NCBI GenBank assembly: GCA_024704765.1
Contig: JAKMXF010000306.1
Span: 1-64,000, forward strand
Direction: 5' to 3'
Source: Oopsacas minuta
Lineage: Eukaryota > Animalia > Porifera
DNA: 64,000 nt
The notes under the pieces are model-generated. The model had not been told where the DNA came from. It saw nothing but the letters and a program-made list of their open reading frames with translations, and did no database searches. Shown one piece after another: positions 6,050-46,097 of this stretch. Position 1 is the first letter of the stretch. The number at the start of each line of letters is the position of its first letter. A program made the translations under genes and the position numbers.

Positions 6050-6204
6050 GTCTCTATGACTAGATATATTCAGTAGAATTTGGATTCTTCTTTCGAAATA
6101 TATTTTCTTATTGATCACTAAATAATACCTTTCCAAACATTTGTAAAGGTCGCGAGATGAGAAACCATATATATTTTTTTATTTAATTAATGGTCCGTAG
6201 CGTA

Positions 6205-6401
6205 GGGGGCTATTTGTACCAAAATCTACTATGATATTCACAAATGGTCCCTTTAGTTAATATATACGATATTCAGCGGAAGGTCAAAGGAAGTCAAATT
6301 AATATAAATGAAACCATATTGAATTGTTACTATAATGTCCTTCGTTAATAAAGGGGACCATTAGTACCAAAACCTAGGACGATTTGGTACATATGGCCCC
6401 C
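6205..6401. mobile_element. ~200-bp MITE
   Basis: Imperfect TIRs gggggctatttgtaccaaaatc / gatttggtacatatggccccc, plus an internal inverted pair (aatggtcccttta / aaaggggaccatt). TSD not resolved. Confidence 0.5.
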
Positions 6402-6544
6402 CCGAACCAAATATTCAGTCGAACCATATGTTCCAGGACAACATACTAGAAATCATTGTTGTTTGACAATAACTGACTTATACAGTAAGTGAGTAACAAA
6501 AACACAAGCGATAAAGGTCAGGTTCACTATTACTTTGCAGTTTA

Positions 6545-7869
6545 CAGGGTGTCTCAAAAGTTTATTCCTCCTTAGTATTTCAATTGAAGTCGTTATAAAT
6601 CGAACAGTATTGTTTACTAACCGACCATTTTTCAGATGATTATTAGTCTATAGTAGTCCAATACTATAATGAATACTTCATTTCCTTATTTGATAATCTG
6701 TTTATATTTTCGAAATTTTTTCTCAACCCTCACAAATTTCATACATGGGTGTCATGAAACCGAGATTTGCAGTTCGTGAGCGAGCGATTGGCATGATTGA
6801 AGCGGGTTCAACACAGACAACAGTCGCCAATACTCTTGGAGTCACAATTCGGACAGTTCGGAACTGGTGTAAAAGGCATAGAGCTGGATATTTGCTTGAC
6901 GACAAGCCCGATCTGGACGTCCGACGAAGCTTTCCCGGAATCCGAAAATTATAATTCGAAATCAATCGGGAAACGCTACAATTCAACCCGAAATCTTTCG
7001 AAATATATTTCGTCTAAGTCGGTGACCGTTAGTAAAGACACAATTCACCGTTATTACGCGACACAATCGAAGCGAAAGCCTATAAAAGACCCTCATACCC
7101 GAAATTGATTGAAAATAAAAGGTAAAGAGGCTAGAATTCTGTCTGGAATGCAAAACATGGACTGGTCGTGATTGGGAAAGAGTTCTTTTTGGTAATGAAA
7201 GCCCTTTTGAGCTTTCCACCGACTAATGGGCAAAATGATCGTGTGGGACATTAATCCGAACAACATTACCCCAGTTGAATCACTCAAAACCCCCCGATAA
7301 TGATGGTCTGGGGAATGATGAGCCGGTCAGGGCTATCAGAACTACACTTCATCCCCCAAACTCTCAGTGAATACTGACTGCTATATTAATTAAATCCTAG
7401 AGAAGTGTTGTCCCCCTACCTTTAAGCGTAGAAAGATTAGAGGCCCACTTACCCAAAGGAAAATGTGTCGAAAGATGTCCGAGACAATTTTCATGCAGGA
7501 AGGCGCCCCTGCCCATAAGGACCCAGAAATGGCTTTCAGAGCATCTACCTGGCTTTTGGGAGAAAGGTGTTTGGCCTAGTAACTCCGCAGATTTAATTCC
7601 CATCGAAAATCTTTGGTCTATTATGCAAGCAGAACTAGACAAGAGAAAGCCCGCTACAAATTTAACACAGCTCGGAAAATATTTGGAAAATATATGGAAC
7701 GGGATCAGCCCGCCGATAATTAATAATTTAGTTGATGGGATGCCAAGTAGAATTAATTCATATATGAAACTTAATGGTGAATATATAGGCAAATAATTAG
7801 ATGAATCTATCTAAGAAATTCTATATTATGGTGGTATTCATAAGAGGAAAATACATTTGAGACACCCTG
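6545..7869 (+). mobile_element. Tc1-like element (DD37E/TRT-type), frameshifted transposase
   Basis: 26-bp TIRs cagggtgtctcaaaagtttattcctc (3 mismatches) and TA TSDs. HTH N-terminus MGVMKPRFAVRERAIGMIEAG at 6745 and a QEGAPAH...WPSNSADLIPIENLW C-terminus. Confidence 0.9.
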
Positions 7870-7899
7870 TATTAGGTAACAATTCATGAAGCTCACTAT

Positions 7900-8900
7900 T
7901 ACAACAGTAGCCTTCTGTTTTGATTTCAATTTCTTCGTCGCTATAGATACACATCAAAGTTAGGATGTTTAAACTCTTTTCCGAGGTGCGACTACGTTGG
8001 TTGGTCTTGTCCGTTGAGGCAGGTAGGATACTATCAACTGTCGAAAGTCCGTGATACTGGGATTAACGTCGTTACAGTTTTGTTGTGTTGCTATTGTATC
8101 AGAAGGTAACCCATCAAAAAGCTCTCTCTTCCACTTTATACTCATTGTCGATATTAGGCAAGAGCATCCATTCCTCCCGTATCTTCCCATGTACATTTGT
8201 TGTGATGATGTATTGAAGAATATGTTCTCCAAAGCTTTTGAATTATTGGTCCATGGCATCGGTATTGTTACCCTTAGACGCATAAATATATTGAATAACC
8301 AGCAAATTTGGATTTCTCATAGATTGGGAACTTTAATTGCTGGCGATCCATATCAAGCAAAGGGATCTAAACAGTGACACGAAAATAATTTTGGGTAAAA
8401 GTAACATTGGGATTTTGTCGTTGTGGATCTGCCAGAAACACGAAATGGAACGTTTATGTCTTCAGACAGGCAACAGTGTCCTAAATAAACATCAATCAAC
8501 CTCTCAATACATAGTAGTATAGTTCTCGACATCCATTTTCAAAGCTTCACTTGAGAGGATTCATAGATATTGGCGAATTTGTTTGTAGTGAATTCCAAAT
8601 TAGACACGTTTCTTCCCCTAAGCAGTCATCAAATTTGATGTTGATTGAATGGTATAGAACATAAATGGGTCAATTCCTTCAAAGAATACAAGTCTGGACA
8701 CCAATAGAACATCTAATGGAAGATATTGAAATGTCACCAAATCTGGACAATCTGAGCAAGATGGTTATCATGAGTATGAGATCTGTTGGCTGACGCTAGT
8801 GTAGCTAACATTGCCCGACATTTCTTCACTTAAGTCAAAAGATCCAGGCCATGGATGAAAATAATTGGTACAATATTTACCATGAGCGAGCTTTGAATCC
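7900..8900 (-). pseudogene. Possible Mutator-like (MULE) transposase relic
   Basis: ORF 7969-8283 contains TIPMPWTNNSKALE, resembling the MULE WTNNxxES motif. The rest is heavily decayed. Confidence 0.3.
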
Positions 8901-9021
8901 ATAAAATCTTAATTAATTAGATCCATCATTTTATTTATTTAATTAATTGTTCATTAACCATCTAGAAATTGGATTTTGACAACAACTAGTTTCAGTAGTC
9001 TATCCACTCACGAATGCCATA

Positions 9022-10262
9022 CACAGTGGTTTGGGGCACAGAATAGGAAAATTATTCATAGTCATTGAATGGTGTTTTGAACTTCGAATTTGCTTGCCAT
9101 TACTTACTTTCTATGCAATCCAAAAATAAATGTGATTGAATGCCTATAGTATATACGCTGGGTGTCAAAGTCTATAGTACTTACATTACGAAAATGTATA
9201 ATTGTGGTTTGAAAATATTCATCAAATTCAATCAGACTGCTTTTGATTTATTTTGTTGTTTCCTCTTCCACAGCCTGACTATAGCATTCCTCATTCAATT
9301 TACACATTTAAATACTTGGAAAATAATTCCAACTTTCCAGATTTATTCCCTTTATATTTTCCACAAAATTTTTCAAAATTCGATTACATATTTCCGAAAT
9401 TAGAAGAGGCATCAAAAATACAGATACCATCAGATAGCTTAGAATTTTCAGGAGTTATTCAAATATGTAATATATTTGACATACTAAACTATTTAAGTGA
9501 GCTTCAATGCGCAACTTAAATTTATGTGTAAATTCCATTTTATATTTTCCGGTGCTAGGCTACTAGTTACATCGATTATTATGATAAATGATGTACCTGA
9601 CCACTTCATTATGATAACTGTATTCGTTCAAAAGTAGTTAGATATTAACTACAAACGTTGATAAATTAATTAGTTAGTTAATATTCATTTATCAAATATT
9701 TATCAATCGCTGAAGGTAAAATTCCACGAAACCGCCGTGATTTAGCTAATATTCTGAAAGTGAAGGACAATAAACTTCCCGATATAGTAAATGAAGTTGT
9801 TAATGTCTTAAATATTGAAGAATATTTGGAGACTCCGTTACTTCGTATGTAAAATTGTTGAAGTTAATTTACCAAAATCCAAAAAGTCAATAGATCAACT
9901 CTTAAATGAGTAGTCGACCTCCGAATTCTTTAGGAACTGAGACCTAAGAAAGTTTGTCTTCAACCTTCATTTGGATCATCAGATTTTCAACCTAGCAAGC
10001 CATTGTTAATGATTACCTTAAAACAACAATAATCCGGGTTATCATCCAGTTTGGAACAAATGATCGAAACTGCGATGACCGATAACGCTACGCCCATAGA
10101 GATTGCCGCACTATTATTGGAACTCATAGCCAATGAGGAAGATAATAGTCCGGTTGCAAAGGTTGCTAAAGAAATTATAAGCGGTAGGTTCAGTTATCAT
10201 ACTGCTCAAGTAGTCCCAGTTGAGAAAGTTCTGTTCCTGGATCTACTCGAAGTCATATCAAT
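9022..10262 (+). mobile_element. 5' part of a RAG1-like/Transib element (heptamer-type end plus NBD-like coding remnant), interrupted by a Tc1 insertion
   Basis: CACAGTG terminus at 9022. 10051-10266 reads ...IAALLLELIANEEDNSPVAKVAKEIISG...VVPVEKVLFLDLLEV, collinear with the N-terminal part of the relic at 33.8-34.0 kb (VALLLYILAVEQIG...IVSPEKSTFL). Confidence 0.5.
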
Positions 10263-10263
10263 A

Positions 10264-11589
10264 TAGGGTGTCCCATAATTATTGCCCTATTGTGTAGATG
10301 ACTATAACATTCAAATATCATTAATTAGATATATCATTACTTTCCTATATATCCACCCTTTAGTAATATACATTTTTCAATTCTTTTTGGCATGCCTTCT
10401 ATTAACATTTCCAGAGTATTCGGACATATCTCAGACCATGCGGATTTTTGCATATTTTTAAACTCGTCCAATCCTGCAGCAGGTGTCTTCCTATCAGATT
10501 GATCCTGGAGTATTCCTCATACATTTTCTATTGGACTTAGGTCTGGGGAATTCGCCCTTACCTAAAAATATTTTAGATTGTCCTTCACCAATCTTGGGTT
10601 CTCTTGGCTGAAGGTTCAGGAGCTCCGTCTTGTTGGATAATATAAATGACATGTTTGGTAACATCTTCCTAGTCAGTAAATCGCCCTTCTTACGTTTTCT
10701 GTTAAGTGCATTTACGCAAGTCTTTTCTAGAATTTCTTTAAGATAATAATCTGCACTCACAGTTTGTTTTGAAGGTAAAAAGTGGAGGTCAGACAAAGCC
10801 TGGAAGCCCATCATCTCCCAAACCATAACTCGTGGGGTATATTTGACGTTTTCAATATTTTGAACCTTGAGCTTACTATGTGCCCAGCTCCTGTCATTAT
10901 GTCGCTTTGATGGATGAAATACTTCAAAGGGCGGTTCATCTGACTACAGGACTCGCTTCCAATCATTCACTGTCCAAACTCTTTTCGCCAGGCAAAGGTT
11001 TAATCGTCTTTCTTTTTGTTTTTCGGTCAATTTTGGAGATTTAGTCCTCTTATATGCCCAAGCTCCCAGGTCCTGCTTCAAATATCTATGGACAGTGTTT
11101 TTAGAGACAAGATTACCGATTCTTGTAAGTTTCCACGCCATTACCCTGATTGATTTATACCTTTTCTCTAAAGATTTAGAGATTACTATCTTTGATGTCC
11201 TGTTTAGCTTTGGGGCGGCTCTGTAGCCTTTTTGTGCTGAAGGCTCTCATTTCGTTTATGCTTAGCCCACCAGTGTCTGATGGTCCTAATATCTTTTCCA
11301 AATATTTGGGCTACAGCCTTTTGGAAAAACCTTCTGATAACTTGATAACAGCTTGATTTCGAATCTCAAATTTTAAACTGGACATCCATACCTTGTTAGA
11401 TTGTTGTTACTGATATAGAAAATATACTGCTTTGACTAGTACATAAGGAACGTCGTTGTATCAAGTTAACTAACTAAATACGGTTGGTCAATAAATTTAT
11501 GATAGAAAACTAGACAATTGTACGATATTTTAGAATTAATGATGAAATGAAACTTAATGCTGCTAGGGCAATAATTATGAGACACTCTG
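10264..11589 (-). mobile_element. Tc1-like element (DD37E-type), decayed
   Basis: 26-bp TIRs tagggtgtcccataattattgcccta / tagggcaataattatgagacactctg and TA TSDs. Transposase fragments at 10944-11141 and 10494-10826. Confidence 0.9.
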
Positions 11590-12723
11590 TATATTGAAAT
11601 GAGTTGGTCTACAAACTCTCTAGCTGTAAAATAATTTTTGCTCAATGATCCAGAATCCAAAAGAAAGATTAACATAATAACCAACAGTAAAAACCTGTTT
11701 CTCGTACTTATCAGTTGTTATAACTTTAGATATTTCTCAGATTTTAACTAATATGGGATTTACATATATTTCTACCGTTTAATTATTTTTTACATTTCCC
11801 AGAAAATAGGAAAAACTTGATTTGGCAGTATGTAGAATCAGAGTTGTTACTAACAAATGTTTAATATAGAAAGTGGATCAATCACCTAAATAGAATCGCT
11901 TAAATATAAATTGTATTCTTTTTAAGTACAAACCGAAAATGTATATATAAATTAATAGATAACATATTATATAGTCGAAACTTCTTGCTATGTTATTCAA
12001 AATATTCAACTGCTTTTCGAAGATTGGATCATCAATTAGAGGATTGTGAATTGGCTCGTGATATGATCATAGATCCTTTGGAATTTAGGATCGGAACTGG
12101 GACCGCTGATCATAATTTTATCGAGGATTGACTTCGGAATCTGTATCCTTTAATTGAGGATCGTCTAATGCCCTAGCCCTGACATAATGATAGTCACTTA
12201 TTCTATGCCTTATCTGAATGAGTCCTAAAAGATAATGTCATTCATTTTATGACTTCTTTGTTAAACTTGAAAACAGTTTTGATCTGTCTCGACAATGCTC
12301 AAAGTCAAACACTAGTACCTCAATTGGGAATTTGCCTCATAATTCAAACGATTAATCAAACGATCTTGTTTCTTAACTTCAATATCTTTGATTACCGTCG
12401 GATATATTGCTAACTAGGCGATTTAGAAATATATTCGTCTTGTCCTTTAGAATTTCCCTAAAATGGTTTATGGCAAACAAATGAGATATTTTCAGTGAAA
12501 CTTTTGATAAATACGATATCTGCTAATATTCTGTAGATGCTTCTTTTTTTCATCCTTACATATACTTTTCGATCAAAACATGGAAATGGGGTCAATGCTT
12601 TTATAATTCGCGATTTTATGAAATGTACGAAACCGGATGCTAATACAAGGCATCAAGAATTGAAATTTCGTAGTGACAGTTTACAATCTCAAAAAATTTC
12701 TAAATTGTGTCCGATTTTCAGTA

Positions 12724-14065
12724 CAGGGTGTCTCAAAATTATTGCGGTGTTGTATAATACTCAATAACTTTAGAATTAATACACTTTGATAAAGTTCTAT
12801 TTGCCAATATATTCCCCTGACAATTCTATACATCTCTGAACCCGCATTGGCATCCCTAAGTACAATCTTTCTAAAATATCAGGGTCGATTGATGACCAAG
12901 CATTTTTTAGCATCTTTTCCAAATCATTAACGTTGACAGCAGGCTTCATCTTGTCAATCTTATCTTGAACGATTGACCAAATATTCTCAATTGGGTTGAG
13001 ATCCGGAGGGTTGCCTGGCCACTTCTGTTTCTCCCAGAACCCAGGTAAGTTCTGTCTGTACCAGTCTTGAGTCTTTCTAGCTGTATGAGCCGGAGCTCCA
13101 TCCTGCATAAATATAGCTTTGGACATGTCTGGTATCATTTTTCTTTCTAAGATCCCTCCATTTTCATCTGTTCTACGCAACGCTTGAATACATGGCCCTT
13201 CTAGAATCTCGTCTACATAATATTTCGCATTAATTGTCTCTTTTTGAGGCAATATATGGAGTGTAGAAAGCGCTTGATAGCTCACCATACCCCAAACCAT
13301 CACTTTTGCGGGAAATTTAATAGTTTGGCGGGGAGTTACTTGTGTACCGTCTCTCCACATATTCGATCGTTCTGTGGATTCGATGGGTGAAATAACTCAT
13401 AGGGAGATTCGTCTGACCAGAGTACACGATTCCAATCATCCACTGTCCAATTCACCTTATCCATACAGAAGCTTAGTCTCTTTTTCTTATGAAATTCTGT
13501 TAGTAAGGGGGTTTTGGTCTTTTATAAGGGTGAACTTTTAAATCCTTGAACAAATACCGGTGTACAGTGTCCTTTGAAACAGTATTTCCCATGTTTGTAA
13601 GTTCCTATCCATAGATTTTGTCGACTTGTGTCTCTTGTCCAATGATTTGCGATAACAATCTTTGAGACTCTGGGTAACTTTTTCGGACGTCCAGCACCCC
13701 TCTTATGTTGTAGGCTTTTATGTGCTTTATGTTTGTACCACCATCTTTGTATGGTTGAAACATCTTTTCCAAGAGAGAGAGCAACGGTCTTTTGTGTTTT
13801 TCCACTAAGCAGCATTCCAATGGCCCTGTTACGGACTTCAACTTTCTCCAAACGCACATTCATCTGCTAATAATTCGCCAATACTCTAAACTAAACTCAA
13901 AATTCCAAAAATAACTATAACCATCTATGGTATAATGCATATTAATAATTACTAAGGTTGGCTTATAAAATTCGCACTAGTAAATTTAACCTGTATCCGA
14001 TTACACTGTTCTTATTTCCTTATAGTTGATCTAATACAACACCGCAATAATTTTGAGACACCCTG
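12724..14065 (-). mobile_element. Tc1-like element, DD37E (TRT-type), frameshifted transposase
   Basis: Perfect 31-bp TIRs cagggtgtctcaaaattattgcggtgttgta and TA TSDs. ORFs 13522-13863 (HTH) and 12797-13360. QDGAPAH...PPDLNPIE has 37 residues between D and E. Confidence 0.95.
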
Positions 14066-14533
14066 TAGTGTTAATTATCAGTAGGCACATCATATAATGA
14101 TTGTTTAGAGTAGGGGTTTCCAACCTAAGGTCTGAATCCGGCCGCTTGCCTTAAAACACGCATTGGATCAATCTTCGCTGACCTAAATGACAAAACCAAA
14201 TTGATATCCCCTTTTCTACTATAATAATATCTAATTTGCTGTCGAATACTTTGTATTAATCACTTTTGTATTAACAGAATTTCATTCTCTGCTTTGTCCT
14301 AACCCTATCGAGCAACCCCTCGTTCGACTTCGCTAGGCTTGTTGAACATATATCTACCATCTAAATGTTCTTGGGACACGATTTAAGGAATTATACCCAG
14401 TGAGCTAGTACCCTCTCGTAAGTTTTACACATTGTTTACAGATAATAATGAAAATTAACGCCTATGATGAAAGGTAGTTGATGCCTTGATTGAGTTTGGA
14501 AGTATCACATTATTGACCACGGCTGGCCCAATA

Positions 14534-16207
14534 CGAAGGGCACTCGAAAAGTTTTGAGGTTGACCGCCATATCAGATAGTGATAATAAAATTGACTATTG
14601 CATTTTACAAATTCTCTCCCTGACAATCTATACATTTTTTCATTCTGGTAAACTAATTATCAAAACATTTTTTCAACTCTTCTTTGGGTATGTCTCCGAT
14701 CGCTTGGAAAAGTGCCCCTCTCAACTCCTCATTAGTCGAAAATCTCCTCCCACGTAATTGATCTTTGATTCTAGGGAACAACCAGAAGTGTAGAGTGGGT
14801 GAGATAATGTTTTGAGTCCAGAATTTTCCAATAACTCACGAGTTCTGATTGCCGTATGCGATGATGCATTATCATGATGAAAAAGAATTCCTCTAATGCC
14901 TATCTTCTCCCGCTGTAACCCAATTGCTGTGATGACTTTGGGTAGGCACACTGTAGTGTACCAGTCGGCAGTAACAGTCTTTCTATCCTCGAGAGCAACA
15001 GCTTCGACAAACCCACTAGATCTGAAAAAAATCGCCCACATTTGTTTCCCAACAGATCTAGCCCTCCGCACTTTGGTTGGAGGTGGGGCATCATCTTCAA
15101 CCCACTCCTTTTACATTCGATTTGTTTCTGGATCATAATGGTATATCCATGTCTCATCCATCACCTGTAAGGATCTCAGAAACAGCTCTTGTATTTCCAT
15201 TAGCAACCTTTTGAGCATAATTTTGCAAAAGTCTATGGGGATATATTTTTGCTGTAAGTTCAAAGAATGGGGGATCCATCGGGCACACAACTTACTGACA
15301 CAAAGCTCTTTGTACAAAATGATATTAATTGTCCCCGATGTTAACTCGGTTTCATACTCTAACTGAGCGTACGTAATATGAGGATCTTTAGTAACTAGAT
15401 CTAGCATTTCATTAACATTTTCTTCATTATGTGAAATATTCGGTCTTCCTGAACGAGGGGCATCTTCAAGAACAAAGTTTCCGTGAATGAATTCCCTGTA
15501 CCATCGTTCAACTGTACTTTGAGAAGGAGCTAGATCCGGGAAATGTTCGTGTAAAGATTCATACATTTCTACTCTTGTCTTCTGTAGTTAGAAACAAAGC
15601 GAATGTCAAAGGAGTGGGTTGAAGATGATGCCCCACCTCCAACCAAAGTGCGGAGGGCTAGATCTGTTGGGAAACAAATGTGGGCGATTTTTTTCAGATC
15701 TAGTGGGTTTGTCGAAGCTGTTGCTCTCGAGGATAGAAAGACTGTTACTGCCGACTGGTACACTACGGTGTGCCTACCCAAAGTCATCACAGCAATTGGG
15801 TCACAGCGGGAGAAGACAGGCATTAGAGGAATTCTTTTTCATCATGATAATGCATCATCGCATACGGCAATCAGAACTCGTGAGTTATTGGAAAATTCTG
15901 GACTCAAAACATTACCTCACCCACTCTACAGTCCTGATTTAGCCCCTTGCGACTTCTGGTTGTTCCCTAGACTCAAAGATCAATTACGTGGGAGGAGATT
16001 TTCGACTAATGAGGAGTTGAGAGGGGCACTTTTCCAAGCGATCGGAGACATACCCAAAGAAGAGTTGAAAAAATGTTTTGATAATTAGTTTACCAGAATG
16101 AAAAAATGTATGGATTGTCAGGAAGAGTATTTGCAAAATGTAATAGTCAATTTTATTATCACTATCTGATATGTCGGTCAACCTCAAAACTTTTCGAGTG
16201 CCCTTCG
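14534..16207. mobile_element. Rearranged mariner (DD34D) with ~600-bp inverted arms (fold-back structure)
   Basis: Both ends start with cgaagggcactcgaaaagttttgaggttgacc. The minus strand 15600->14534 carries most of a transposase, and 15590-16207 repeats its 3' half on the plus strand. HDNASSH...YSPDLAPCD gives D34D spacing. Confidence 0.9.
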
Positions 16208-16547
16208 CACTAGCGAGCTTCGCGTGTCATGTGGCTGCGTGACAGCTTGATAAGTAAATTGAAGCATGTTCTTGATACATTATCATAGATTTATCAAACC
16301 TATGGCGTACCCAAAATTATACAACATGATCAAGGGAAAGAGTTTACAAGCAAGTTATTTAAAATCTGAAATTCACAAATTTTGATAAACAAAATGAGAG
16401 AGAATTTTGAATAAATGTTTTCACTTTAGGAGTTCAGATATACCACTACGCACTTAATATAGATTATCGGTTGATAGTTGCTTACCACTCCCAAGGCAAC
16501 GGATTGGTTGAAGTACATAACAAGATATTCTAACTGTAATGGATATA

Positions 16548-17622
16548 CAGTGTGTCCCATAAAAAACTGGAATAGGTAAATCATTTCAAAGAATATTATT
16601 ATCGAAGATTTTTTCAATGTTTTTCCGAAATATCTAAAGTAATTTAGTAGTTCTTCAGTATTTTATCTTATAACCGCTATTTTCCTGAACCAGCTGACAT
16701 CTTTTGGGCATGGAAGCCCAATAAGGTCGAAGAAAATCTGCATCAATCCCCTCCCAAATTTTCAATAGTTGTAATTTGAGGTCTCGAATATTTTTAGGGT
16801 TGCGTTAGATTAGTTCTAACTTAATCCAGGCGAACAAGTTTTCAATAGGGTTAACATCTGGTCTTTGACTTGGCCAGTCTATTCTGTTTTGTTTCATATT
16901 TTTGTCAATCCATGCCTTGGTTAGTTTGGCTGTGTTTTGGGTCGTTATCCTGCACCAAAATCCACTCAGACCCATGAAAAACAGTTGCTTGTGTTATCAA
17001 GTGCCCCTCTAGTATATTCACAAAGAGAGCTGCTGTGAGTATTTCTTGGAAAATACATAGTGGAAACGTTACTACAGACGAAAAAGCAGCCCAAATGTTG
17101 ACTTTTTGGGTATGTTTCACTGTTGTTCGCAGCCTCTCAGTACCTTCCTTGGTCCACATGCGAATTCTCCCACGTGCGATCCAAATCGAAGCCTCATCGG
17201 TGAATATAGCATGTTGCCAATCATTACTAAGATTTTTCTCTGCCCATTCAAGTCGTGATATACGATTTTTCTCAGATAGTAGAGGAATGGGGCTAGGGTA
17301 GGGCTTCGTATACCTTAACTTCTTCAAAGCACGTGCAACCGTATTCTTTGAGGTGGTAACTGGACACTTATCAGCCATAGCTAAGAGAAATGTAAGGGGT
17401 TCTCCGAATTTGTCGTGCGATACTGTCCGTTATTAATGGGAGTAATTTCCCTGGCCTCCCACTCCCTTTTCTTCGTTCAATTGGCAAACATTCACTTATT
17501 CGGGATTTTAGGTTGTAAACCGTTGTTAATGAGACCCCTACAATTCTAGATATTTCCTTAACTGAGTGTTTATTCCCCTTTAGAAGTATAATTGCGTGTT
17601 CCCTTTTCTCAGTCTGACACAT
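16548..17622 (-). mobile_element. Tc1-like element, 5' TIR not found
   Basis: TIR-like ta|cagtgtgtcccataaaaaactgg at 16548. ORFs 17371-17622 (HTH) and 16905-17378 (FTDEASIW, QDNDPKH), followed by WPSQRPDVNPIEN. Confidence 0.85.
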
Positions 17623-17945
17623 GGTGAATAATAAATGTTATTAAATCAAAATGATAATACAGATATAAATGATTATAGCAAAAGTGTTTGTGTCATGATG
17701 ATGCAACAGTAAATATACGCAAAAAATTTTTATAATATAAGGGAAATGTATTCCCAATAAAAACATGACTTAATGGAATATAAAATTTTAAGTAGATATG
17801 CCTAATACAGACTGATAGAAAAATTCAATTACAATATAACCTTGACCGTAGTATATTTACAGTATTTGACTATCTAAGACATTTCGTATAGCCTTTTAAT
17901 GCATTCAATTCGATTTAGCCTACATTTTCACAAAAATTTATTCTA

Positions 17946-19101
17946 TTGACCATGAGTCCTGAGAGGTCAGTAATTGTTGAATTATACAAGGCGGGAAAAA
18001 GCCCTCCTGAGATTTTAAAAATGTTAAATATTGCTAAAGGACGTAAAGCATTCATCTACAGGACAATAAAACGTTACAATGAAACTGGGGACACGAATGA
18101 CGAACCAAGATCTGGTTGTCCTTGTTCTGTGAGAACCGCAGCCCTCAAGAGGAGGATGAGAGGACGGATTCGGCGAAATCCACGGTTATCTATGAGAAAA
18201 ATGGCTAAGGAGTTGAAAGTTACACATCAAACTGTCCAAAAAGTGGTACACCGTGACTTGAAAATGTTTTGTTTTACAAGAAAGAAAGTACACTTCCTCT
18301 CAGAGTTGGTCAAGACAAAACGATTGTTGAGAAGCAAGGCGTTACTTGCAAGACACGCTACCGGCGGATTCGAAAATATCATCTTTACAGATGAAAAGAC
18401 TTTCACTATAGCTGAGGCTACGAATGTTCAAAATGATCGTGTGATCTCTACAGTTATCTCAGAGATCCCTGATATGTTTAGGTACATCAGTCGGAAAATG
18501 AAACTTCTCTCAGTGATGATTTGGGCTCGTGTCTCTGCTGTTGGCCGCACGCCATTGATTTTCGTACCTGCTGGAGTGAAAATCAACGCGAAAACTTACA
18601 AGGACTCGATCCTAGAACCTGTTGTAAAAATCTGAGCCAGACAATGTTTTTCGGACAGCCATTTGTTTTCCAACAAGATGGTGCTCCTGCTCATACGGCG
18701 ATTACCACACAGGACTGGTTAGAGGGCAAAATCCTCGATTTTATCCGAAAGGAAGAATTGCCTCCATAGAGCCCTGATTTAAATCCAATGGACTATTCTC
18801 TTTGGTCCATCTTGGAGAATAGAGCTTGCTCGGTTTCACACAGCACTATAAAGTCCCTGAAAAAGTCTTTGTATCGCGAATGGAAGAATATACCCCAGGG
18901 AACCCTGCGTGCCGCAGTGGAAAGTTTCCCTACCAGACTCAAGGCTGTAATTTCCAAAAAAGGAGAATATATAGAATAACTATTTTAGTAATTGAATCAT
19001 AACAGTAGTAAATAGTCGTATATGCAATATTAACATTATATTCCAAGTTGTAAAAATATAATCGAGAAAATCCTTTGTATCAGAACTTAGCAGCCACCCT
19101 G
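17946..19101 (+). mobile_element. maT/mori-type (DD37D) element, 5' end truncated, frameshifted
   Basis: ORFs 17946-18635 (FTDEKTF), QQDGAPAHT and 18788-18979 (MDYSLWSILE). Right TIR ttgtatcagaacttagcagccaccctg|ta. Same family as 30926-32237. Confidence 0.9.
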
Positions 19102-19721
19102 TACTATCGCCACTCTGAGCCAGTTATGGACTTAACACATACACGAAATCCCACTTTTTTAAACACATACAGTGATACAATTATTATCGAATAATGTTTC
19201 AATATATATAAACTCAACTGTATACCAGGAACCAGCGAAATTAGCACGAAATGTCCCGAATTCCTATTACCAGTAATACAGGTAGCAATTATGAAATGCA
19301 ACAGCACAAAAAGTGCTCAAAGCTCCAGTTGTTTCATCCAAGTCTGAGCACCACTGATTTCACCTGACATTCGCACTGTCATGCATGGATGGCGGAATAG
19401 GGGGGGGACTGGGCCCCCAATAAATATTTATGGGTAGCTGAGCCCCCCCACTTATTCATTACTTATAATCACTTGGATTGCCATTTAATTAACTACCTGC
19501 GCAATTGAATGTTATAAAAATGTAAGTTCCAAGTATTAATCGGAAATTGATCTCATTGTGACATATAATAGGATAATTAAACATGAGAAAGAATCCAACA
19601 ATTAAGGAATTGAATCAAAAGATGTTTCGATTTTTACTCCTGTATATGGTTGCCTGAACAATGATACATATAGATTAGGCCATTCAAATTTGAGATTCTT
19701 CAAACTATTTTCAAATTTCGA

Positions 19722-22700
19722 ATGTTATCTAAGAAATATTGTGTTGTGCGTCTTCTAGGACAACAAACATTGGGCAACTTTATCGGAATAAAACGAAATG
19801 ATTGTTTGGTTTCATCTATTGATACAGGATCGGATCAAGGAATAAATAATTCCGCTGAAAATGACATACTAAATCCTTCTTCTTCAAGTGTAGATGAAAT
19901 AGAAAATCCTGCGCGGTTGATCTGTGAAAACATATGTTGTTGGTTAGAAAGTGGTGGGCCTTTTCTGGATTTTAACGCAAGAAATTTACTAGCATGTATA
20001 AAAAAGGCTGATGAAGGTTCTAAAGTCCAGGAAAGAACATTTCAAAGAAATTGGCCTAATCAATACCATTGGCTCATCTATTGCATTTACAATAAAAATG
20101 CATTTTGCTATGTCTGCAAACGAGGTATACATTTGAAACGAATCGCATATTTAGAAAAGGTGAAGAGGCATTCATCTATGTGGAGTTTTCAATTGGAAGA
20201 GCGGAAGAGAAAAGTTCAAGAATCATGAACAAAGTCAGTTCCACAACCACAACCTTGCGTGCCAGAAGTAAAAAGCATATCTTCAGTTTCAATATGTGAT
20301 CAACTTGCAGCTATTGATGTGCGTCAAAATGAACAGCATTATCGAGGATTACTAGCCCAGATAGATTCAACAAAGTATTTATGTCGCCAAGGGCTCCCTC
20401 TCAGAAATATAGAAGAAACTGAAGGAAATTGAAATCAACAATTGAAACTTAGAGCTGGAGATAATTATCATATATAGCTTCAAGAAATTATATGAGTCAC
20501 GATATAATATCTGAGATTATAGAAATAATGGCTAGTCATATTATAACTTCCATCCTAGGAAGAATACGTAAAATGAATGTTTCTTGTTATTGCTGATGGA
20601 AGACGTGATATCTCTGGGATTGAACAATTCTCTTTTTGTGTTCGGACGGTTAATAATGATTTCAGCTTTAATGAAGACTTTTTAGGACTATATGCACTTC
20701 CAGTAACTTCTGCAGCTGTGATGTTTGATGTGATAGGTGATATTCTCGTAGGATGGAATAGATAATAATATATGCCGAGGACAATCATATGATGGTGCTT
20801 CGGCAATGTCTGGGCATACTTCTGGAGTGGTCACTCCTTGTAAATTGGTTGTTGACGAAGCAATTTCGTTCATTGTTATTCTCACAAGTTGATTTTGATT
20901 TTACATGATCTTGTAAAGAATGTAAGAATTTTATCAGACGCTCAGGATATGCCAAAGAATTATACAATTTCATAATGCTAGCACCTAAGAGATTGATCAC
21001 TTTCCAAAAATTCTAGACCAGCTAATCTTCGATGAAGACAATGAATGGACACAATTTGAATCCCTGAAAAGCCTTCTCTAACTCGATTTACCTGCAGAAC
21101 TAGTGTATATTGTGCAATTTTCACAAATTACAAACCCCTAATAGATGTCCTAGAATCATTAAGTTTTGAAACAGGGGAAACACTGGAAAAATCATTAGCT
21201 CTGCTTGAGATATTATCAAGTTACAAGAACATGTTTGCAATTACCTTGCGAAACTATTATTCTGTCACATCGAGCATGTAGCAATTATTTTACAAATTAA
21301 AGATCTGAATTCAGAAACAGCTGCACATGCATTAAAACTATTTCGCTGTATTTGGAAGCCCAAAGGACAGATCCTAAGTATATTTTTCCTTATTTGAAAT
21401 AGAAGCGAAAATTACATTGTGAACCGCCGTCAATACCTCGTTCTCTAGCACAATTATTTCCTCACATTATACAGGGTGTCTAATAAGTTCTGTTATATAT
21501 CAATTCCCCAATAATTTCAAATTTATCCATTGTAAAGCCATGAAACTTTCTATTTTCTTAGGACTTATGTTCCTAATTACAAATTACAAATATCATTCAA
21601 TATAGCCTCCCTTTTTATGAATTACGCAAGTTAGTCTGCTCCGAAACTGATGGACAGCTTTTCGCAGCTCCTCCTGTGGGATTTTCTGCCATTCACTCGA
21701 CAAACTAACTTTGAGGGACTCCAAACTCTTGTGAGATTTCGCACAGGCCCTGCTCTCCAAGTTTGCCCAAACAGAATAGTCGAGTGGGTTTAAATCTGGG
21801 CTTGATGGTGGCCATTCATCCTTTACTTATGAAATCGATATTTTGCTCACGGAACCAACTCTGGGATACTTTTGAAGCATGTGCAGGCGCAGAGTCTTGT
21901 TGGTAAGTCCAAGGATGGTTTTGAAAGAGCTTCTCACCCGCAGACGCAATTTCAGGCTCCAAGACCAGTTCTCTTTACGTCTGGGAGTTTATTTTCACTC
22001 ATTGGGGGACAAAAATCAGGTTTGTCCGTGAGTCTGCCGACACTCCCGCCCATACCATCAGAGAAAGAGGCTTCTGGACTCTTTCAATGTACTTGATGCT
22101 ATCTGGGATATCCTGACTTCGAGAAGCAAGTATACGGTCGTTTTGACGATTGCTTGCCTCCTCAACGGTGAACAGCTTCTCATCTGAGAAGAGAATCTGA
22201 TCTTCAGTCCCAGGAGCGAATCGGGCTTTTAGTTGTATGCATCTTTCGAGTCGCTTACGACGTATGGAGTCGTTAAGATGGTGTACGTTTTTCCGCTTAT
22301 AGGACTTCATTCCTAGGTCCTCTACAACCAATTTCCGCATTGTTTCGTGATTGACACAGAATTCACGAGACATTTTTCGCATTGAACGCCGGGGATTTCT
22401 TAGGATTCGACATCTAACACTATTCTTCAGGGCTGGTGTGCGGGCGGATCTTGGACGACCAATTCGTTTCCTGTCGGACACGCTGCCAGTCTCTATATAT
22501 CGTTTTATTGTGCGATAGATCAACATGGGATTCACTTTATCATTTTTTAGCCTTTTTAGAATTTCACTATTGCTAAATCCAGATTCGTGAAAAGTGACAA
22601 TTTTTGAACGAATTTCTTCTAACATGATTTTCTGGGAAATCATCAACTTGAATGATATATACTTGGTATAATTTGAAAGAGCGCCAAAAATGCTACAAGA

Positions 22701-39427: not shown

Positions 39428-40421
39428 TTATTAGATTTGAGTTTGATTGGACAGAAAATATAGATAACACTAATATAATAAAAATAATAGCTTGTTACTA
39501 AAACCGGAAGGATTTAATAATTGTTCTAAATTCACGAATATTGAAAATTGTTATGTTAAAGAACACGTTGAGAGAAGGTAATAGCTAAAGAACTCATAAA
39601 TCAGATGAAAACTGACCAAGTTGTGAAATATTTCCTTACTGAGCCAAATCCAATGGGGAAAATTGTATTAGTCGCTTTACTGGAATAATGCTGCTGAATT
39701 CTATTCAAACTACCATTGCATATATTCAATATTGTGGTTATCATCACTTTGGCAAGTTGATTATTTCATGACTATACTGGTTTGCGAAATTAGAAACCTA
39801 TAATTAATTGATAGAATAATTTAATGAATGTGGGCTGGGGATTCATTCCCCTTACTTCCTTGAATTTGAAACGCTTGAATGAGCGTAGCGAGTAATTGAG
39901 CGCAGCGGAATTAGCTCGATTAACACATGAAGCGGTCTCAAGACTTCATTTCATCCGAAGTACTTCGGAATGCGATCAAAAATTAGTATGTAGGAATAAC
40001 TTACAAATCATTATTTCCAAGTATTAGTGCCAATCAGGCCCAGCGGAAGCTCGAGAGAGGTGAGGGGGGGGGGCTTGAATCGTGATGATCGCAGAGTAAA
40101 TACATTTAATTTGAGGGAATAGAGAACCCCTCAAATATACATCACGAGAACAACTCCCCTAGAGATTGAGGTATTTATTAGTGAGTAGCGCATGCGCTGC
40201 ATTTGAGTAGCACATGCGCTACATTAGGATTATTGGTAAGTCATATTTATAGATACACATTACCATTTTAACCATAGTTACCCAAACTGCTGAATTGAAT
40301 GTGATTAGATAAGTTTCGAAAGCACATTACGACAAGTGGTCATTGGAATGCTGGTGCATTTATAATGTATAGAAGTAGATATATAAATTTATACCATTCG
40401 TTAGATAATTTCATTTTGGAA

Positions 40422-43400
40422 ATGGCTGAAAAAGTAACTTCACAAACTGGATCTGATAATATACACCCAAAAAAATGAAAAATCTCGGAGAAAGAAGATA
40501 TCAGCTTCATCACATTAGACATCGACAAAGTATGCCTATCAGAAGGTGAATCATTTAAATTGATAGAATCAGATGTACCAACATGGTCAAAACCAGCTGA
40601 TAATTATATTCTTAATTCCTTATGCTTTCAAGCAAACTTTAGTTGCTTGTTGATTCAATATAATTTTTCGCATAGGCAGTGTCAACCTGATTGCTTCTCA
40701 GAACCAGAAATGAAACAAGTAGAAATGCCTATAATTGACCAGTATGTAAAACTATTGATATTGAAGTCTCACATATATAAGTTAGAGAATAGTGAATATC
40801 TTATAATTGCAGATTATGATCACTCACAAGGTAAATATACGTTATTATCACTATTATTGTTGTCTGTTTGCATGTTTGTCTCTGTGCCCCGGTTCGTAGG
40901 GCTCAACACCTTTATTTCGGTTAATCGGGTCAAATGGCCTGGTCCCAAGTGACCCTATTAATCGGAGTCTACTGTACATTTACTATTCTCACTACCAAAA
41001 CTAAACATTATGTATTTCAAGGAACCATTATACTAAACAAAAGGAGAATCATAATTGAAACAAACAGCAATCTATGCGCCAATTGTTATAGTGATACTTG
41101 TTCTCATTTTCAAGTATTTGAACTCTGTTCACAAAATGATTGTTTGCAAGTTTGTGAAGCAAACATTCTAGAAGACATACTATATTATTTCCCAAGTCCT
41201 AGCGATATCTTTCTGTTGACAGATGATACTTTTCACAACTTCCAATTAAATAATGATAGGTAGTTATGTTGTTCTTGTTCTTCAAAGTGCAAACAACATT
41301 CTAGACTCTATAATATTCTCGAAAATACTGGATCAAATACACAGAAAAAGGTTGAATATACACGATATCAACAAGACCAACACCATTGAATCTAGATGAA
41401 AGCCAAATAGCAATTTAAAACCACCAGCTCTGCCATGGCATCAATTTACCTTTATTATGTATCCTGAATAGGAATTATGTGACTATGGTTTCAAATTCAA
41501 TGAAGAGGAGAAGCTTAAACTAGAGAAAGTTGGAATAGTTATCTATTTAGAAATGATATTAATTAACTCAAAGATTACAAAGGTATATATTTATCATCAA
41601 TGAACCATTCGCTCGTTCACAATTTTAATTTAGTATGGGGGGTTATCCTACGTATTTAGCCGTTGAAAACAAGTCTTTGCAATTATAAAGGAATTTCAAT
41701 AAATATTTGGTCTACATATAAGATTGTTCATTCGATTGCAATGAACTCGTCCCAATTTACCTCCTCCCTAAATTTGCCTGTGCTTGGTCCTCCGTAATTA
41801 TATTGTAAGTATATAGTTTACAGTTCAAGATGCAGTGGACCTTGCAATTGCTTGGCAGTCTTCGAAGGTCAGAACACTTTACTGTTAAACATCAACAACA
41901 AGTACTTTGTTCATTACAGTTTGTTATATGATTATAACAAGTTGATGATCATGTCTAGAAATACTTTGTACGGTTACTTGAGGTATGTATTGTTTAAAAC
42001 CATATTCTTGATAAATTAAAATTCCTATATACATACAATCTAATTCGTCGTTTTACTCTTTAATGTCAAGAACAGGGAGCTATCAGAATGGGTAGAACGA
42101 ATACATTCCATTGTCGCATTGCTTATCAGGCATGGAACGCCTATCTAAGAACAGTAGACATAGATTATGACTCGAACTACATATGTCCAATGTGTAAAGA
42201 TCATCCCGATGTGATAACTTTAGATGGCAGAGCGATGGGAACAATGAAATCGGTACCAAAAGTGGATGCAAAATTCGATCAGGATCAACAATACCTATGA
42301 TCCCATTTTCAGATCGTGTTTTTATCCCCGACACAGCAATTAGAAAGCAACTCCTTAAATACAGTTCTGAAGGTTTGACAGAAAATACATTAAAAGACCT
42401 ATTGAAGTCTATTCATAAAGAAATGGCTGATTATATTTGATTTAGTTCCATTAGGATAGAAAATTTAGTGACTATAAGTGAAGAATATATACACGTTAAG
42501 AAAGTCTTAAAACTCCTTTGCCATACAGATCCAATATCAGGAATATTCCAATCCTCTCTGCTGGAACCGAGTGAATGAAAAGCAATAGCTCTTCTTACCA
42601 ATGGAAAATTAGCAAGTGAAGATTCCTTAAGTTCAATATATCAGAAGATGTTTACATTGGATATCTTATTCAATTCTATCAAACCTAGTGAAGATATCAC
42701 ATGCACAGGGTTTGCCACTTTACATCCCAAAGTTTTCTCGCTGTTGAAAAGAATCCTGACACAAAAAGAGAGTTTATTTAGTAGAGCGTCAAGAAAATTG
42801 GTGGAATATTCTCCACAAAGCGAAAACTATTACAATTATTTCCCAGCATTCACAACAAACTACATGTAAGTTAAAACTTGTAATTGTGTTTATACTGAAA
42901 ATATTAATTGCTATTCAACAACTTTTTTATATTATACCATTCTATTATACTTGTACAGGTGCCAGTATACGAAAATCTAGAAGTTGAGTCAGCTGAACCG
43001 TGTCTCAAAAATTTTCCAACTCACAAAAGGTTTTCCCCCGGAATAGTTGCAATCGTTGTAAACACAGGATTTATTATGGTTTCCAAATCCTCAGACTACA
43101 CGAATCTACAGTTGTAATTTATAATTAGTTAATGACCATATTCAGAGAACAGCCAAAAGTGATCTTCTACGATAATACTTGCAACTTACACAAAATATGT
43201 ATGAAAAGGTAACTGCACATAACAAATTGGGTATAAATGATAAATAGTCGAGATTTCAACTAGAAATTTATTTGTGATTTCTTATATAGGGACCCCAAAG
43301 TATTTCGTAAGATAACATTTCAGATTGATCGATTCCATTCTACAAACCACAAGTGCAATCCCTCTTATTCTTTCAGATCAATTCAGACTGATGAGATGAA

Positions 43401-43556
43401 AAAGCTAAACTCACAAATTGTGAGCAGTTGTTTTCATCACTAAGAAGGATAGCAACACAAATCGTATACATGCGTATAGATAATGTATTCTTCACTACAA
43501 GATATTTTCTAGCATGTTTGAATCTACATATTCTATCACAAAATAATAATATATGA
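40422..43556 (+). pseudogene. KDZ-family transposase with Cys-cluster (CxC-like) N-terminal region, multi-exon, decayed
   Basis: CSGPCNCLAVFEGQNTLLLNINNK, YICPMCKDHPDVITLDG (D, 42223), CLKNFPTHKRFSPGI, PKVIFYDNTCNLHKICMKR|DP (D, 43171), QIDRFHSTNHKC, NSQ-CEQLFSSL. GT-AG introns, e.g. 40831-41021 and 43209-43289. Confidence 0.85.
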
Positions 43557-43718
43557 AAATAGTTTATATGTTAGGAGACTCAAGACAATTGTGACAATAA
43601 AAGTTATCGATGTCTTTGTCAATATCTTCAAGTCCTACACATGGTTTGTGGAACCATTAAGACATTTGGGACATTCAACCATATTTTTTGACGCGCAACT
43701 GAATAGATGACACAAACA

Positions 43719-45275
43719 CTATAACTTTATCTTTAAATCTGTCCCTAGATTAGTAGTCAGGGGAGATAGTAATACTATGCTTTCTAACTTAGGAAAGGGT
43801 GCTAAAATTCCGCTGTTGAAACTATCAGTTAGGTGAGATCTCATTCTTGACTGTTTCCAGTATACTTGGGTTGGGTCGCCTCCCATTGCTATTGTCAAAC
43901 AGACTGCAGCTGCAAATAAACCACAATCCGCCTCACCTCTTTGCTGTTGAATAGGAGCAAGGGCGACTTTCAGCTCATGATCAGCATCATTCCCATATAG
44001 AAAGTCCAATTGCACAGCTAATTCACCAGATATTCTCCCAGTAGATAACGAATCATATAAAGGTACATGCCCTTCAACATCAATACTGGAGCAAACCCAG
44101 TGAAGTGCACCATCGTGATGCAGCTGTATACTAAGACGAGGAGCTTTGACGAATTGACGATTCTAAGAATTAATTGAATATCAAATATTGATTACAATTG
44201 AAAAATTTAAACCGAGAAACTCACTTCGGAGAGAATAGTATCCTGAAGTCCCTGTAAATGTGGGAAATTCTTCTTCAGTAATGTCTACAAGTACATATAT
44301 GATATGAGAACATTTTCTAACAAAATGGATTGAATTTCAATGTACAATAAACTTAGACAGAATGCATTAATGGTGGTGCCTGTTAGAAAAGTATTACACT
44401 TGACAATTCAGAAATTGACAAGTTTTTCTCATTTAAACTAATGGGAGGAGTGATTATTTGAATAAGATCCAATGGTTTAACTCCGAGTAATGTCACCAGA
44501 CTGGATGTTGGGATGGGTGTTTGAGGATCTGAAATAGGTTTGTTCGAAGCGATAACGGGTTGCTGAAAAAACTCATCGAAGGAATCATCACTAGTATCTA
44601 CATCAGATTCTTGGTGTACTACATCTCTAGTGAAATCAAGAGGAGATCTAGATCGGTCACGATAGATATCATGTCGCGATGTTTGAGAAGAGCTTGGAGA
44701 CTTCTAAGATTGAGGGCGAACTGAAACTCGCGCTTTCATAGAGTAATCCTTATATGATTCTATTATCATACGCAGATGAATCTTACATGCGCTTTTTATG
44801 TTTTCGAAAGGGACTCTTTCGGGCCAATAAGGTGGTTTGAGAGAAGGATCATTCCAAAAAAACATACCGTTCCCTAAATTACAGATATATAATCAGTGAC
44901 CCATATAATTATATAAATTCACACCGTTGACTTACCAGTTGACACTTTTATAATCGCAGAAACAAGTCTTCGCAGTCCCTGTACATTATAGCCAGATATA
45001 TCTTCATCTAATAGCTTGAGGATTTCGTGATCACGGACAGGCTTTGATAACGCCGACGTACTTGTAGATATTTGGTTAGTCAGTAGAGTTCTTGCTATTT
45101 CATCGCTATTCCTAGTGATATAGGTTTGAAATTTTTCTGGACCCAAAGAGCCAAGCTTTCCATGCCATGAAAATACAGCTCCGGCATATTCACCCGTTAC
45201 TGAACGAAACTCAGACAATATGTCTGTCAGTACCATTATAGCATTAGTCTTTGTCAATTTGGGTATCTTTGGCAT
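43719..45275 (-). pseudogene. NRF1/Ewg-type DNA-binding domain fused to a Ulp1/C48-like cysteine protease (one premature stop, probable frameshift)
   Basis: After splicing the 62-bp intron 44874-44935 it reads LRRLVSAIIKVSTGNGMFFWNDPSLKPPYWPERVPFENIKS, which aligns without gaps to the NRF1 segment LRAFIPEMLKYSTGRGKPGWGKESCKPIWWPEDIPWANVRS. The C-terminus has HDGALHWV, LYDSL and QQQRGEADCGLFA. TAG at 44704-44706. Confidence 0.8.
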
Positions 45276-45622
45276 TTTGGCTAATCAAGGGTACAGAATG
45301 GGAAATCAAGAGGAAACGCTCATTGAGTAAAGTATAAAGTTAATTGAGAAACATATTTAGGGATTTGGCTAATAAAGGAAGTAGAAATAAGTAACAAAAC
45401 TCAAAAATAAATATCAGTACCTGCGAATTTAATTACACTATAATAGGACGTAATGTGAGAGCCTACTTTTTTCCAAAATTTCAATTACAAATTAATGCAG
45501 CGCATGCGCTACTCATTTTTAAATATATGAGAGATTACATTTGTTCTCAATGCAAATAAAAGTTGAGCATAAGTTAGGGCAGTTCAAACTGAGTGATCAA
45601 ATCAATATATATAATTCTGTAA

Positions 45623-46097
45623 TCTATATAAAAAAATCTCAATCGTTGTCTGTCTGTATTTTTGTCCGTGGTTAAGGAATGGATTTAGGGTATGCAAATT
45701 TGAAATTGTCACATAGCTATGTATTATTATGTTCATCAAGGAAGTAAATAGAATTCAAATACAACTTAACTAAATATATCGCACATGCTGAGTCCGATTT
45801 TCACACTTTTGAATGAATCATATGTAAATTTAGTCCTGTTTTTATGAATACATAAAGTAAACAATTTGTCCATATCTCAAATATATGTACAGGCTTGCTC
45901 AAAACGGCTACCGAGGGGGTTAATCTTACAAAATATTTCAATAATATGTGTGCCTTATACACATATCCGTGAATTACACTGTTTTAAATACATCTATATT
46001 ATAATACTCAAAGGGGGCCGTCAATTTGGAGAATAATTGATACCTCGAGGCGTAATGCGGGGAGTTTATCGACAAGCGACGAGCCAAATGCTCGTAG
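45623..46097 (+). mobile_element. Possible non-autonomous Helitron-like element
   Basis: A|TCTATATAAAAAAATC...gtctgtctgt start and a terminal hairpin acgagc-caaat-gctcgt. The 3' end is not a canonical CTAG. Confidence 0.35.

Follow-up and report, generated by a model that had tools for sequence, protein, structure and literature searches.

Positions 40168-45529 of a 64,000-nucleotide stretch of DNA from the glass sponge Oopsacas minuta (assembly GCA_024704765.1, contig JAKMXF010000306.1, positions 1 to 64,000; referred to here as the window) are, in our judgement, probably a dead copy of a multi-copy, two-gene KDZ (Kyakuja-Dileera-Zisupton) transposon, in which a transposase gene faces a partner gene encoding NRF1-like, Ulp1 and PHD domains, and we propose that the partner protein binds the ends of the element. 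An original prediction, made from the sequence of the window alone, had described two convergent, intron-containing genes lying between 22-bp inverted repeats at this position, and both the exact repeat and the two multi-exon genes were found as described.

Boundaries, copies and decay of the element

The 22-bp inverted repeat (TGAGTAGCGCATGCGCTGCATT) occurs at 40182-40203 on the plus strand and at 45494-45515 on the minus strand, with none expected from 100 shuffles of the sequence. The original prediction took these repeats as the ends of the element, at 40182 and 45515, and thereby placed each end 14 bp too far inward (Table 1). Contigs from four public sequencing runs of one sample were mapped onto positions 39900-45800, and in three of the runs an empty-site joint was recovered that connects 40142 directly to 45530 at a depth similar to that of the flanks. 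The uninterrupted site reads ...CCCCT AGAGATT ACATTTG, and one empty-site contig carried TACAACAACTCCCCT between the two sides, a diverged form of window positions 40143-40160. Taken together, the joint and the uninterrupted site identify AGAGATT as a 7-bp target-site duplication and the element as 40168-45529. The read contigs also contained loose ends of other element copies that start behind 45530, and independent support for the boundaries came from two further loci, of which one (L004) aligns across 40167-45530 and the other (L003) stops at 45529. The terminal inverted repeats are 36 nt long, 22 of them perfect, and the element termini, 5'-GAGGTA...TATATG-3', are common to seven other insertions (L004, L002, L005 and L006-L009), so that other copies end at the same termini.

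Table 1. Features of the element in the window and core sequences of the end units in each family.
Feature	Position	Strand	Description
Whole element	40168-45529	+	5,362 bp; decayed copy of a two-gene KDZ transposon, delimited by the empty-site joint and the ends of L004 and L003
Left target-site duplication	40161-40167	.	AGAGATT, identical to 45530-45536; empty-site contig
Right target-site duplication	45530-45536	.	AGAGATT, 7-bp exact direct repeat
Left terminal inverted repeat	40168-40203	+	Imperfect outer 14 nt (GAGGTATTTATTAG) and perfect 22-nt unit
Right terminal inverted repeat	45494-45529	-	Perfect 22-nt unit with GCGCATGCGC and imperfect outer 14 nt (...TTTTTAAATATATG)
Two tandem 22-bp end units	40182-40225	+	First with core GCGCATGCGC; second (40204-40225) degenerate, GCACATGCGC
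KDZ transposase gene (predicted)	40424-43556	+	Multi-exon pseudogene; tblastn to P0074/P0078 and to intact exons of L007 and L002
Partner gene (NRF1-like, Ulp1, PHD; predicted)	43564-45275	-	Exons 45275-44936, 44873-44357, 44284-44225 and 44162-43564
NRF1-like dimerisation and DNA-binding domain (predicted)	44750-45275	-	Exon 1 and start of exon 2; Pfam PF10491 and fold match
Ulp1/SENP (peptidase C48) domain (predicted)	43760-44395	-	Catalytic His, Asp, Gln and Cys all intact in the window copy
PHD finger	43585-43718	-	Cut off in the window copy by the stop at 43719 and the frameshift at 43656
End-unit core, O. minuta family A (window)			GCGCATGCGC
End-unit core, O. minuta family B (L002)			GTGCGCATGTCC
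End-unit core, ERZ25071281			GATCATGATC
End-unit cores, ERZ20067936			ACACATGTGC and GAACATGTTC

The family is multi-copy. Over most of the element the word depth in the read contigs was about 600-1,900, compared with about 50-370 for the left flank; the ratio, roughly 10-25, is a relative depth and not an exact copy number. Three further copies were located in O. minuta, two of full length (L001 and L004) and one truncated at its 5' end (L003), with 95.2-95.8% pairwise identity to the window copy. In all three loci GCGCATGCGC is confined to the element ends. The left end of L001 has two perfect 22-bp units, its termini are deviant (ACTG... and ...ACTC) and it is flanked by no clean duplication; the target-site duplication of L004 has decayed, with 5/7 positions matching.

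Both genes of the window copy are pseudogenes, while the element ends are intact. In an alignment with L001 and L004, 136 substitutions and 16 indel columns are private to the window copy. Private stop codons interrupt the transposase at 40476 and 42576 (CGA>TGA in both cases) and at 42438 (TTA>TGA), and the partner at 44704-44706 (CAG>TAG) and 43719-43721 (TGG>TAG). About a dozen private deletions of 1-2 nt were also observed, among them single-nucleotide losses at 40676, 42080, 42293, 43055 and 43417 in the transposase and at 44397 and 43656 in the partner; some of them fall within short homopolymers, where assembly error could account for them, and others lie outside such runs. The original prediction presented the element with mention neither of this decay nor of the AGAGATT duplication that flanks it. 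It also gave the distance between the two stop codons as 162 bp, which is literally true of the window copy but not of its ancestor, in which the stops were 7 nt apart (43554-43556 in the plus-strand gene and 43564-43566 in the minus-strand gene); in the window copy the PHD exon is masked by the stop at 43719-43721 and the deletion at 43656.

One of the four sequencing runs, X4, contained joints that match the predicted introns of both genes, at 44163-44224 (CT..AC on the plus strand), 44285-44356, 41581-41814 (GT..AG) and approximately 42868-42959. Because X4 is alone among the runs in having such intron-like joints, we infer that it is RNA-like and that members of the family are transcribed and spliced.

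A KDZ transposase facing an NRF1-like, Ulp1 and PHD partner

The plus-strand gene is assigned from its protein sequence to the KDZ (Zisupton-type) DDE-type transposases, as the original prediction had proposed. Two proteins of O. minuta, P0074 and P0078, score 27.0 and 26.7 bits against the Pfam KDZ family (PF18758), for which the gathering score is 26.6 bits, and they align to window positions 42417-43523 (E 6.5e-36). Matches below this threshold were also observed on separate exons of L004 (16.2 and 21.7 bits), L007 and L002, where profile positions 76-135 and 145-213 are matched in collinear order, and KDZ was the sole transposase family matched. The broken transposase pieces of the window copy itself gave no KDZ match in Pfam, and a search of the ESM Atlas with the central transposase exon returned chance-level matches only, with scores up to 0.78. 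The motifs CPxC...DG, YDNxCNLH, DRFHxxNHxC and NSQxCEQLFS are readable in the transposases of all families. KDZ transposases carry cysteine-rich (CxC) modules N-terminal to their catalytic domain; cysteine-rich stretches are visible here, such as CANCYSDTCSHFQVFELC at approximately 41080-41140, and they matched no CxC family in Pfam.

The structure of the minus-strand partner gene was established from P0054, an intact O. minuta paralogue of 485 amino acids that carries the automatic name "calcium-responsive transcription factor". The end-to-end alignment of this protein with the window runs between 45275 and 43567 and comprises four exons, mostly at 73-97% identity, with one short segment at 56%. 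The original prediction had recognised an NRF1 DNA-binding domain and a Ulp1 protease in this gene, and both assignments hold; the C-terminal PHD finger was overlooked.

The N-terminal part of the partner is predicted to have the NRF1 fold, with both its dimerisation and its DNA-binding parts. Against the Pfam profile Nrf1_DNA-bind (PF10491, gathering score 23.5 bits), exon 2 of the window copy scored 17.4 bits and P0054 scored 21.6 bits, both below the gathering score, and P0009, from a sister family, exceeded it with 25.4 bits. When P0009 was compared with PDB sequences, chains of NRF1 were the sole matches. An AlphaFold (AF2) model of P0054 residues 1-165, with a predicted local distance difference test score (pLDDT) of 82.5, had NRF1 structures as its three best matches in the PDB. 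Alignment of the model by VIA-align to 8k4l and 8k3d gave Z scores of 9.1 and 8.4 with a root-mean-square deviation of 2.5 A and 27% identity over 77 residues; the next match had a Z score of 5.5. Among the Swiss-Prot models of the AlphaFold database, Ewg, P3A2 and human, mouse and fish NRF1 were at the top of the list and aligned across residues 1-160. Sequence similarity between the partner and NRF1 is found mainly in the second half of the domain, and a phmmer search with exon 1 against 1.84 billion representative sequences returned 50 clusters, mostly single-exon fragments, with no bona fide NRF1 among them.

Residues R206, N242 and R244 of human NRF1 read the TGCGC half-site (PMC10810270). 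The equivalent of R206 in the partner (R102) is nearly invariant, that of N242 is kept, and that of R244 is replaced by lysine (ENIKS), as judged from a short loop alignment.

The middle part of the partner is a predicted Ulp1/SENP cysteine protease. Family sequences scored 17.2-20.8 bits against the Pfam C48 profile, whose gathering score is 20.7 bits, with a best E-value in the family of 4.2e-5. The top 50 PDB matches of a model of the protease domain were nearly all Ulp1/SENP and related CE-clan proteases, with a probability of 1.0. Across seven sequences that represent five families the catalytic Asp, Gln and Cys do not vary, and the catalytic His is present in every sequence that extends over its position. 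Behind the protease, the PHD region of P0054 (residues 456-485) aligns with the window at 97% identity. Six of the seven family sequences match the Pfam PHD profile (PF00628; 23.8-27.3 bits in the paralogues, best E-value 9.8e-8), and the C4HC3 zinc-binding signature was found in family sequences.

Conservation of the gene pair and of the end units

Copies of other families were found in O. minuta and in three ENA assemblies, which probably come from other sponges. In the second O. minuta family, family B (L002:7720-13814), a partner protein that is 32-44% identical (P0055) is encoded convergently with a 778-amino-acid PF18758 gene, between GAGGTA...TATATG termini and a perfect 8-bp duplication, CCAAAATC. 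Assembly ERZ25071281 holds a 6.7-kb family with four copies (L006-L009) that are 98-99% identical and have open exons for both genes; their duplications are ATTTTGC, ATGATTTG, CCTTTTG and CATAAGTG. This assembly is probably that of another sponge, because the closest named relative of a host gene flanking the element is from O. minuta, at 43% protein identity. The same convergent arrangement was observed in ERZ20067936 (L005, 8.9 kb), with the duplication GTTATAC. All intact copies thus combine the same gene pair with shared termini and duplications of 7-8 bp, the duplication being 8 bp long in L002, L007 and L009 and 7 bp in L005, L006, L008 and the window, and the partner gene is kept across families at 27-45% identity.

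The original prediction had asked whether the two genes co-occur in further copies between the same ends or whether the locus is single-copy and the genes occur independently of each other. The genes proved to be paired and convergent in families A and B of O. minuta, in ERZ25071281 and in ERZ20067936, the common termini recur in the seven further insertions, and the read depth and the three copies with about 95% identity to the window show that the locus is not single-copy. Some loci hold shortened copies only (L014 and L015, with a partner gene and no transposase, or remnants), and these we read as decay rather than as independent occurrence of the partner gene. In the third ENA assembly, ERZ26869290, a partner gene lies beside a remnant of the last transposase exon (L010:8001-12400).

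Distant partner-like genes, 27-28% identical in exon 1, were observed at L011:1-6166 and L010:8001-12400 of ERZ26869290 in head-to-head and tail-to-tail repeats within 6 kb. They may represent a rearranged or amplified derivative family.

Every family carries arrays of 22-24-bp units at both ends, in which a central CATG is invariant and the flanking positions are family-specific (Table 1). The core of the family A unit, GCGCATGCGC, is the NRF1 consensus palindrome. When up to one mismatch is allowed, this 10-mer has three occurrences in the whole 64-kb window, each within an end of the element. The arginine aligned with R206, the TpG reader in NRF1, is nearly invariant alongside the invariant CATG, and the residues at the positions of N242 and R244 differ by family (N-K, S-R and N-Y, from short loop alignments). 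This co-variation of unit flanks with putative base-contacting residues is suggestive of a protein that has diverged together with its sites.

Possible role of the partner and relation to known systems

As the ends of the element carry a motif recognised by NRF1, we propose that the element probably encodes its own end-binding protein. In the mechanism that we envisage, the partner protein would dimerise and bind the 22-bp units at both ends. The bound protein would then mark or pair the ends and recruit the transposase, in the manner of the Myb-like protein of Harbinger or of TnpA of En/Spm. The Ulp1 and PHD modules could have SUMOylated proteins or proteins of chromatin at the element as their targets, and their fusion to the NRF1-like domain is suggestive of an element that manipulates the SUMO and chromatin pathways.

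Several observations weigh against a two-gene transposon with its own end-binding protein. The sequence scores for both NRF1 and KDZ lie at or just under the Pfam gathering scores, and those of the window copy's own fragments lie below them; comparison of exon 1 alone, and of the exon-1 profiles A1 and A2, with PDB sequences did not find NRF1. An intact transposase was present in none of the four O. minuta copies examined. The transposase has a cysteine-rich N-terminal region of its own and may therefore recognise the ends unaided. In L002 the GAGGTA terminus is on the partner side, whereas family A and the ENA families have it on the side of the transposase; the orientation of the gene cassette relative to the asymmetric terminal tetranucleotides therefore varies. 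Target-site duplications and an empty site were among the checks named in the original prediction, and duplications of 7-8 bp and an empty-site joint were indeed recovered, but the joint may be paralogous rather than allelic. The empty-site contig differs from the window at 40097-40142, and it could derive from an allele or from a paralogue of the flanking repeat because this part of the flank is itself repeated. Finally, the palindromes lie approximately 200 bp upstream of the transposase start codon (40424) and approximately 220 bp upstream of that of the partner (45275), and they may be promoter elements instead of, or in addition to, transposition sites.

This last observation leads to the main alternative, in which the partner serves the element as a transcription or anti-silencing factor and not as a cofactor of transposition, with the end palindromes as promoter elements of the two inward-reading genes; such promoters might be driven by the partner or by host NRF1. 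In the former case the NRF1-like domain would then activate both genes, and the Ulp1 and PHD modules would counter SUMO- or chromatin-based silencing. NRF1 itself binds promoters as an activator (PMC10810270), PHD and Ulp1 are modules of chromatin and SUMO biology, and the spliced forms of both genes in run X4 indicate that the family is transcribed. However, arrays of 5-7 inverted units at both extreme ends, beside conserved termini, are the usual site pattern of transposition proteins, and the 22-24-bp spacing and strict terminal position of the units are kept though their sequences differ between families. We regard this alternative as unlikely, and a promoter function could coexist with end binding.

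It is also conceivable that host NRF1 binds the ends and that the NRF1-like/Ulp1/PHD gene is captured cargo with no role there. The unit of family A is a canonical site for host NRF1 (PMC10810270), and transposons are known to capture host genes, for example TET/JBP in KDZ and other fungal transposons (PMC12730594). In contrast, the sister families keep the gene pair with cores that are not NRF1 sites (GATCATGATC, ACACATGTGC and GAACATGTTC), for which divergence together with their own proteins is the better fit, and the partner has been kept with invariant catalytic residues at 27-45% identity; captured cargo therefore appears very unlikely. That the locus consists of two host genes between chance repeats, or belongs to a superfamily other than KDZ, is extremely improbable: the weak Pfam scores of the window copy's own pieces could be read in this way, but the family is multi-copy, the pair recurs with the same termini and with duplications at unrelated positions of several genomes, no transposase family other than KDZ is matched, and duplications of 7-8 bp are unlike the 2-3 bp of CACTA and Plavaka elements (PMC12730594).

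The two-gene element was compared with known transposons and with NRF1 itself. To our knowledge, few eukaryotic cut-and-paste transposons are as poorly characterised as the KDZ/Zisupton elements, for which no cofactor or mode of end binding is known; the original prediction places a Ulp1 domain inside the Zisupton transposase open reading frame. The arrangement in the window had been taken as undescribed in the original prediction, and a literature search recovered no published description of it and no paper in which KDZ is brought together with NRF1 or Ulp1, or Zisupton with Ulp1. Like other members of this superfamily, which is known in metazoans (PMC9297572), the sponge element has a multi-exon KDZ-domain transposase and terminal inverted repeats. 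Its duplication of 7-8 bp overlaps, and is not identical to, the 8 bp reported for Zisupton and Dileera (PMC12730594). Metazoan Zisupton has been described as a single large multi-exon gene (PMC9297572), and reviews of KDZ report TET/JBP genes as cargo in fungi and mention no partner gene for a DNA-binding protein (PMC12730594), whereas the sponge family has a separate convergent gene with DNA-binding, protease and PHD domains. Its transposase, at approximately 700-800 amino acids, is also shorter than those of nematodes and fish, which reach 1,400 amino acids (PMC9297572). A further difference lies in the ends, which are built of 22-24-bp units with a palindrome matching the domain family of the partner.

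Harbinger elements encode a Myb-like protein that binds subterminal sites and recruits the transposase, and TnpA of En/Spm (CACTA) binds short repeated subterminal motifs at both ends and regulates the promoter of the element. En/Spm is the closest analogue for the arrays of end units and for a possible dual role of the partner; it differs from the sponge element in producing TnpA and TnpD by alternative splicing of one unit, in its 3-bp duplication and CACTA termini, and in having unrelated proteins. The plant Mutator-like Kaonashi/KI-MULEs carry a C48 Ulp1-like protease domain, but they belong to the Mutator superfamily and their protease is not fused to an NRF1-type domain. With PIF/Harbinger and Nuwa the sponge element shares the division into two separate genes (PMC12730594), one for a sequence-specific DNA-binding protein, which is predicted in our case. 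Unlike it, PIF/Harbinger has an unrelated transposase, a 3-bp duplication, a Myb instead of an NRF1-type domain, and no protease or PHD module.

Similarity to NRF1, Ewg and P3A2 extends to the predicted fold of both parts of the domain, the WWP-type motif FW..(x)..P.(F/W)WP...(P)F.N, the equivalents of R206 and N242 and the presence of the cognate GCGCATGCGC in the ends. In contrast to these proteins, the sponge protein is a transposon product in which the domain is joined to Ulp1 and PHD modules, and it is devoid of the C-terminal activation region of NRF1; identity is only about 16-27%, R244 is changed to lysine and the sister families have other palindromes. This is the first link that we found between the NRF1 DNA-binding fold, the origin of which is unexplained, and mobile DNA. 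The family also provides a directly testable model, as its 22-bp unit and the domain of its partner are defined, a homologue of that domain has been solved in complex with this motif, and intact copies that are nearly identical to one another occur in what is probably another sponge. The series of palindromes around CATG (GCGCATGCGC, GATCATGATC, ACACATGTGC and GAACATGTTC), together with the changes in putative base contacts, offers natural variants in which the evolution of specificity in this fold can be followed.

A transposon origin has been proposed for the THAP, BED, paired and Myb-like (NAIF1) domains. Descent of the NRF1/Ewg/P3A2 DNA-binding module by domestication from the end-binding protein of an ancient KDZ-type transposon would be a comparable case, which we consider quite unlikely; the reverse course, in which the transposon captured an NRF1 gene from its host, appears at least as likely, since homology gives no direction. 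If domestication did take place, the NRF1 sites of promoters could be relics or mimics of transposon ends. In the model of P0054 residues 6-71 (approximately 45060-45260 of the window, minus strand), the next-best folds after NRF1 were those of MADS-box proteins (SRF, MCM1 and MEF2; Z approximately 5.5), and repeats of GTF2I were among the fold matches for the C-terminal part of the NRF1-like module. These matches may be informative about where the NRF1 fold ultimately came from.

The surroundings of the element are themselves repetitive. Just to its right, a repeat at 45613-45824 (also present at L003:223-328, with a short match at L001:7728-7746) had a depth of approximately 5,000-22,000, compared with approximately 1,000 for the KDZ family, and looks like a separate high-copy family of unassigned type. 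Its interpretation as a miniature inverted-repeat transposable element derived from the KDZ element was rejected, because the TAAATATAT string that it has in common with the KDZ end is internal to that repeat, which is a different family. The immediate flanks, 40097-40167 and 45537-45612, are moderately repeated, with several contigs at 40103 whose summed depth is approximately 10 times that of the flank, and the KDZ copy seems to have inserted into another repeat. The loci around other copies are likewise rich in transposons and include a RAG1-like RNase H gene and a gene with a hAT dimerisation domain (L004:1518-3434 and L001:17257-17568).

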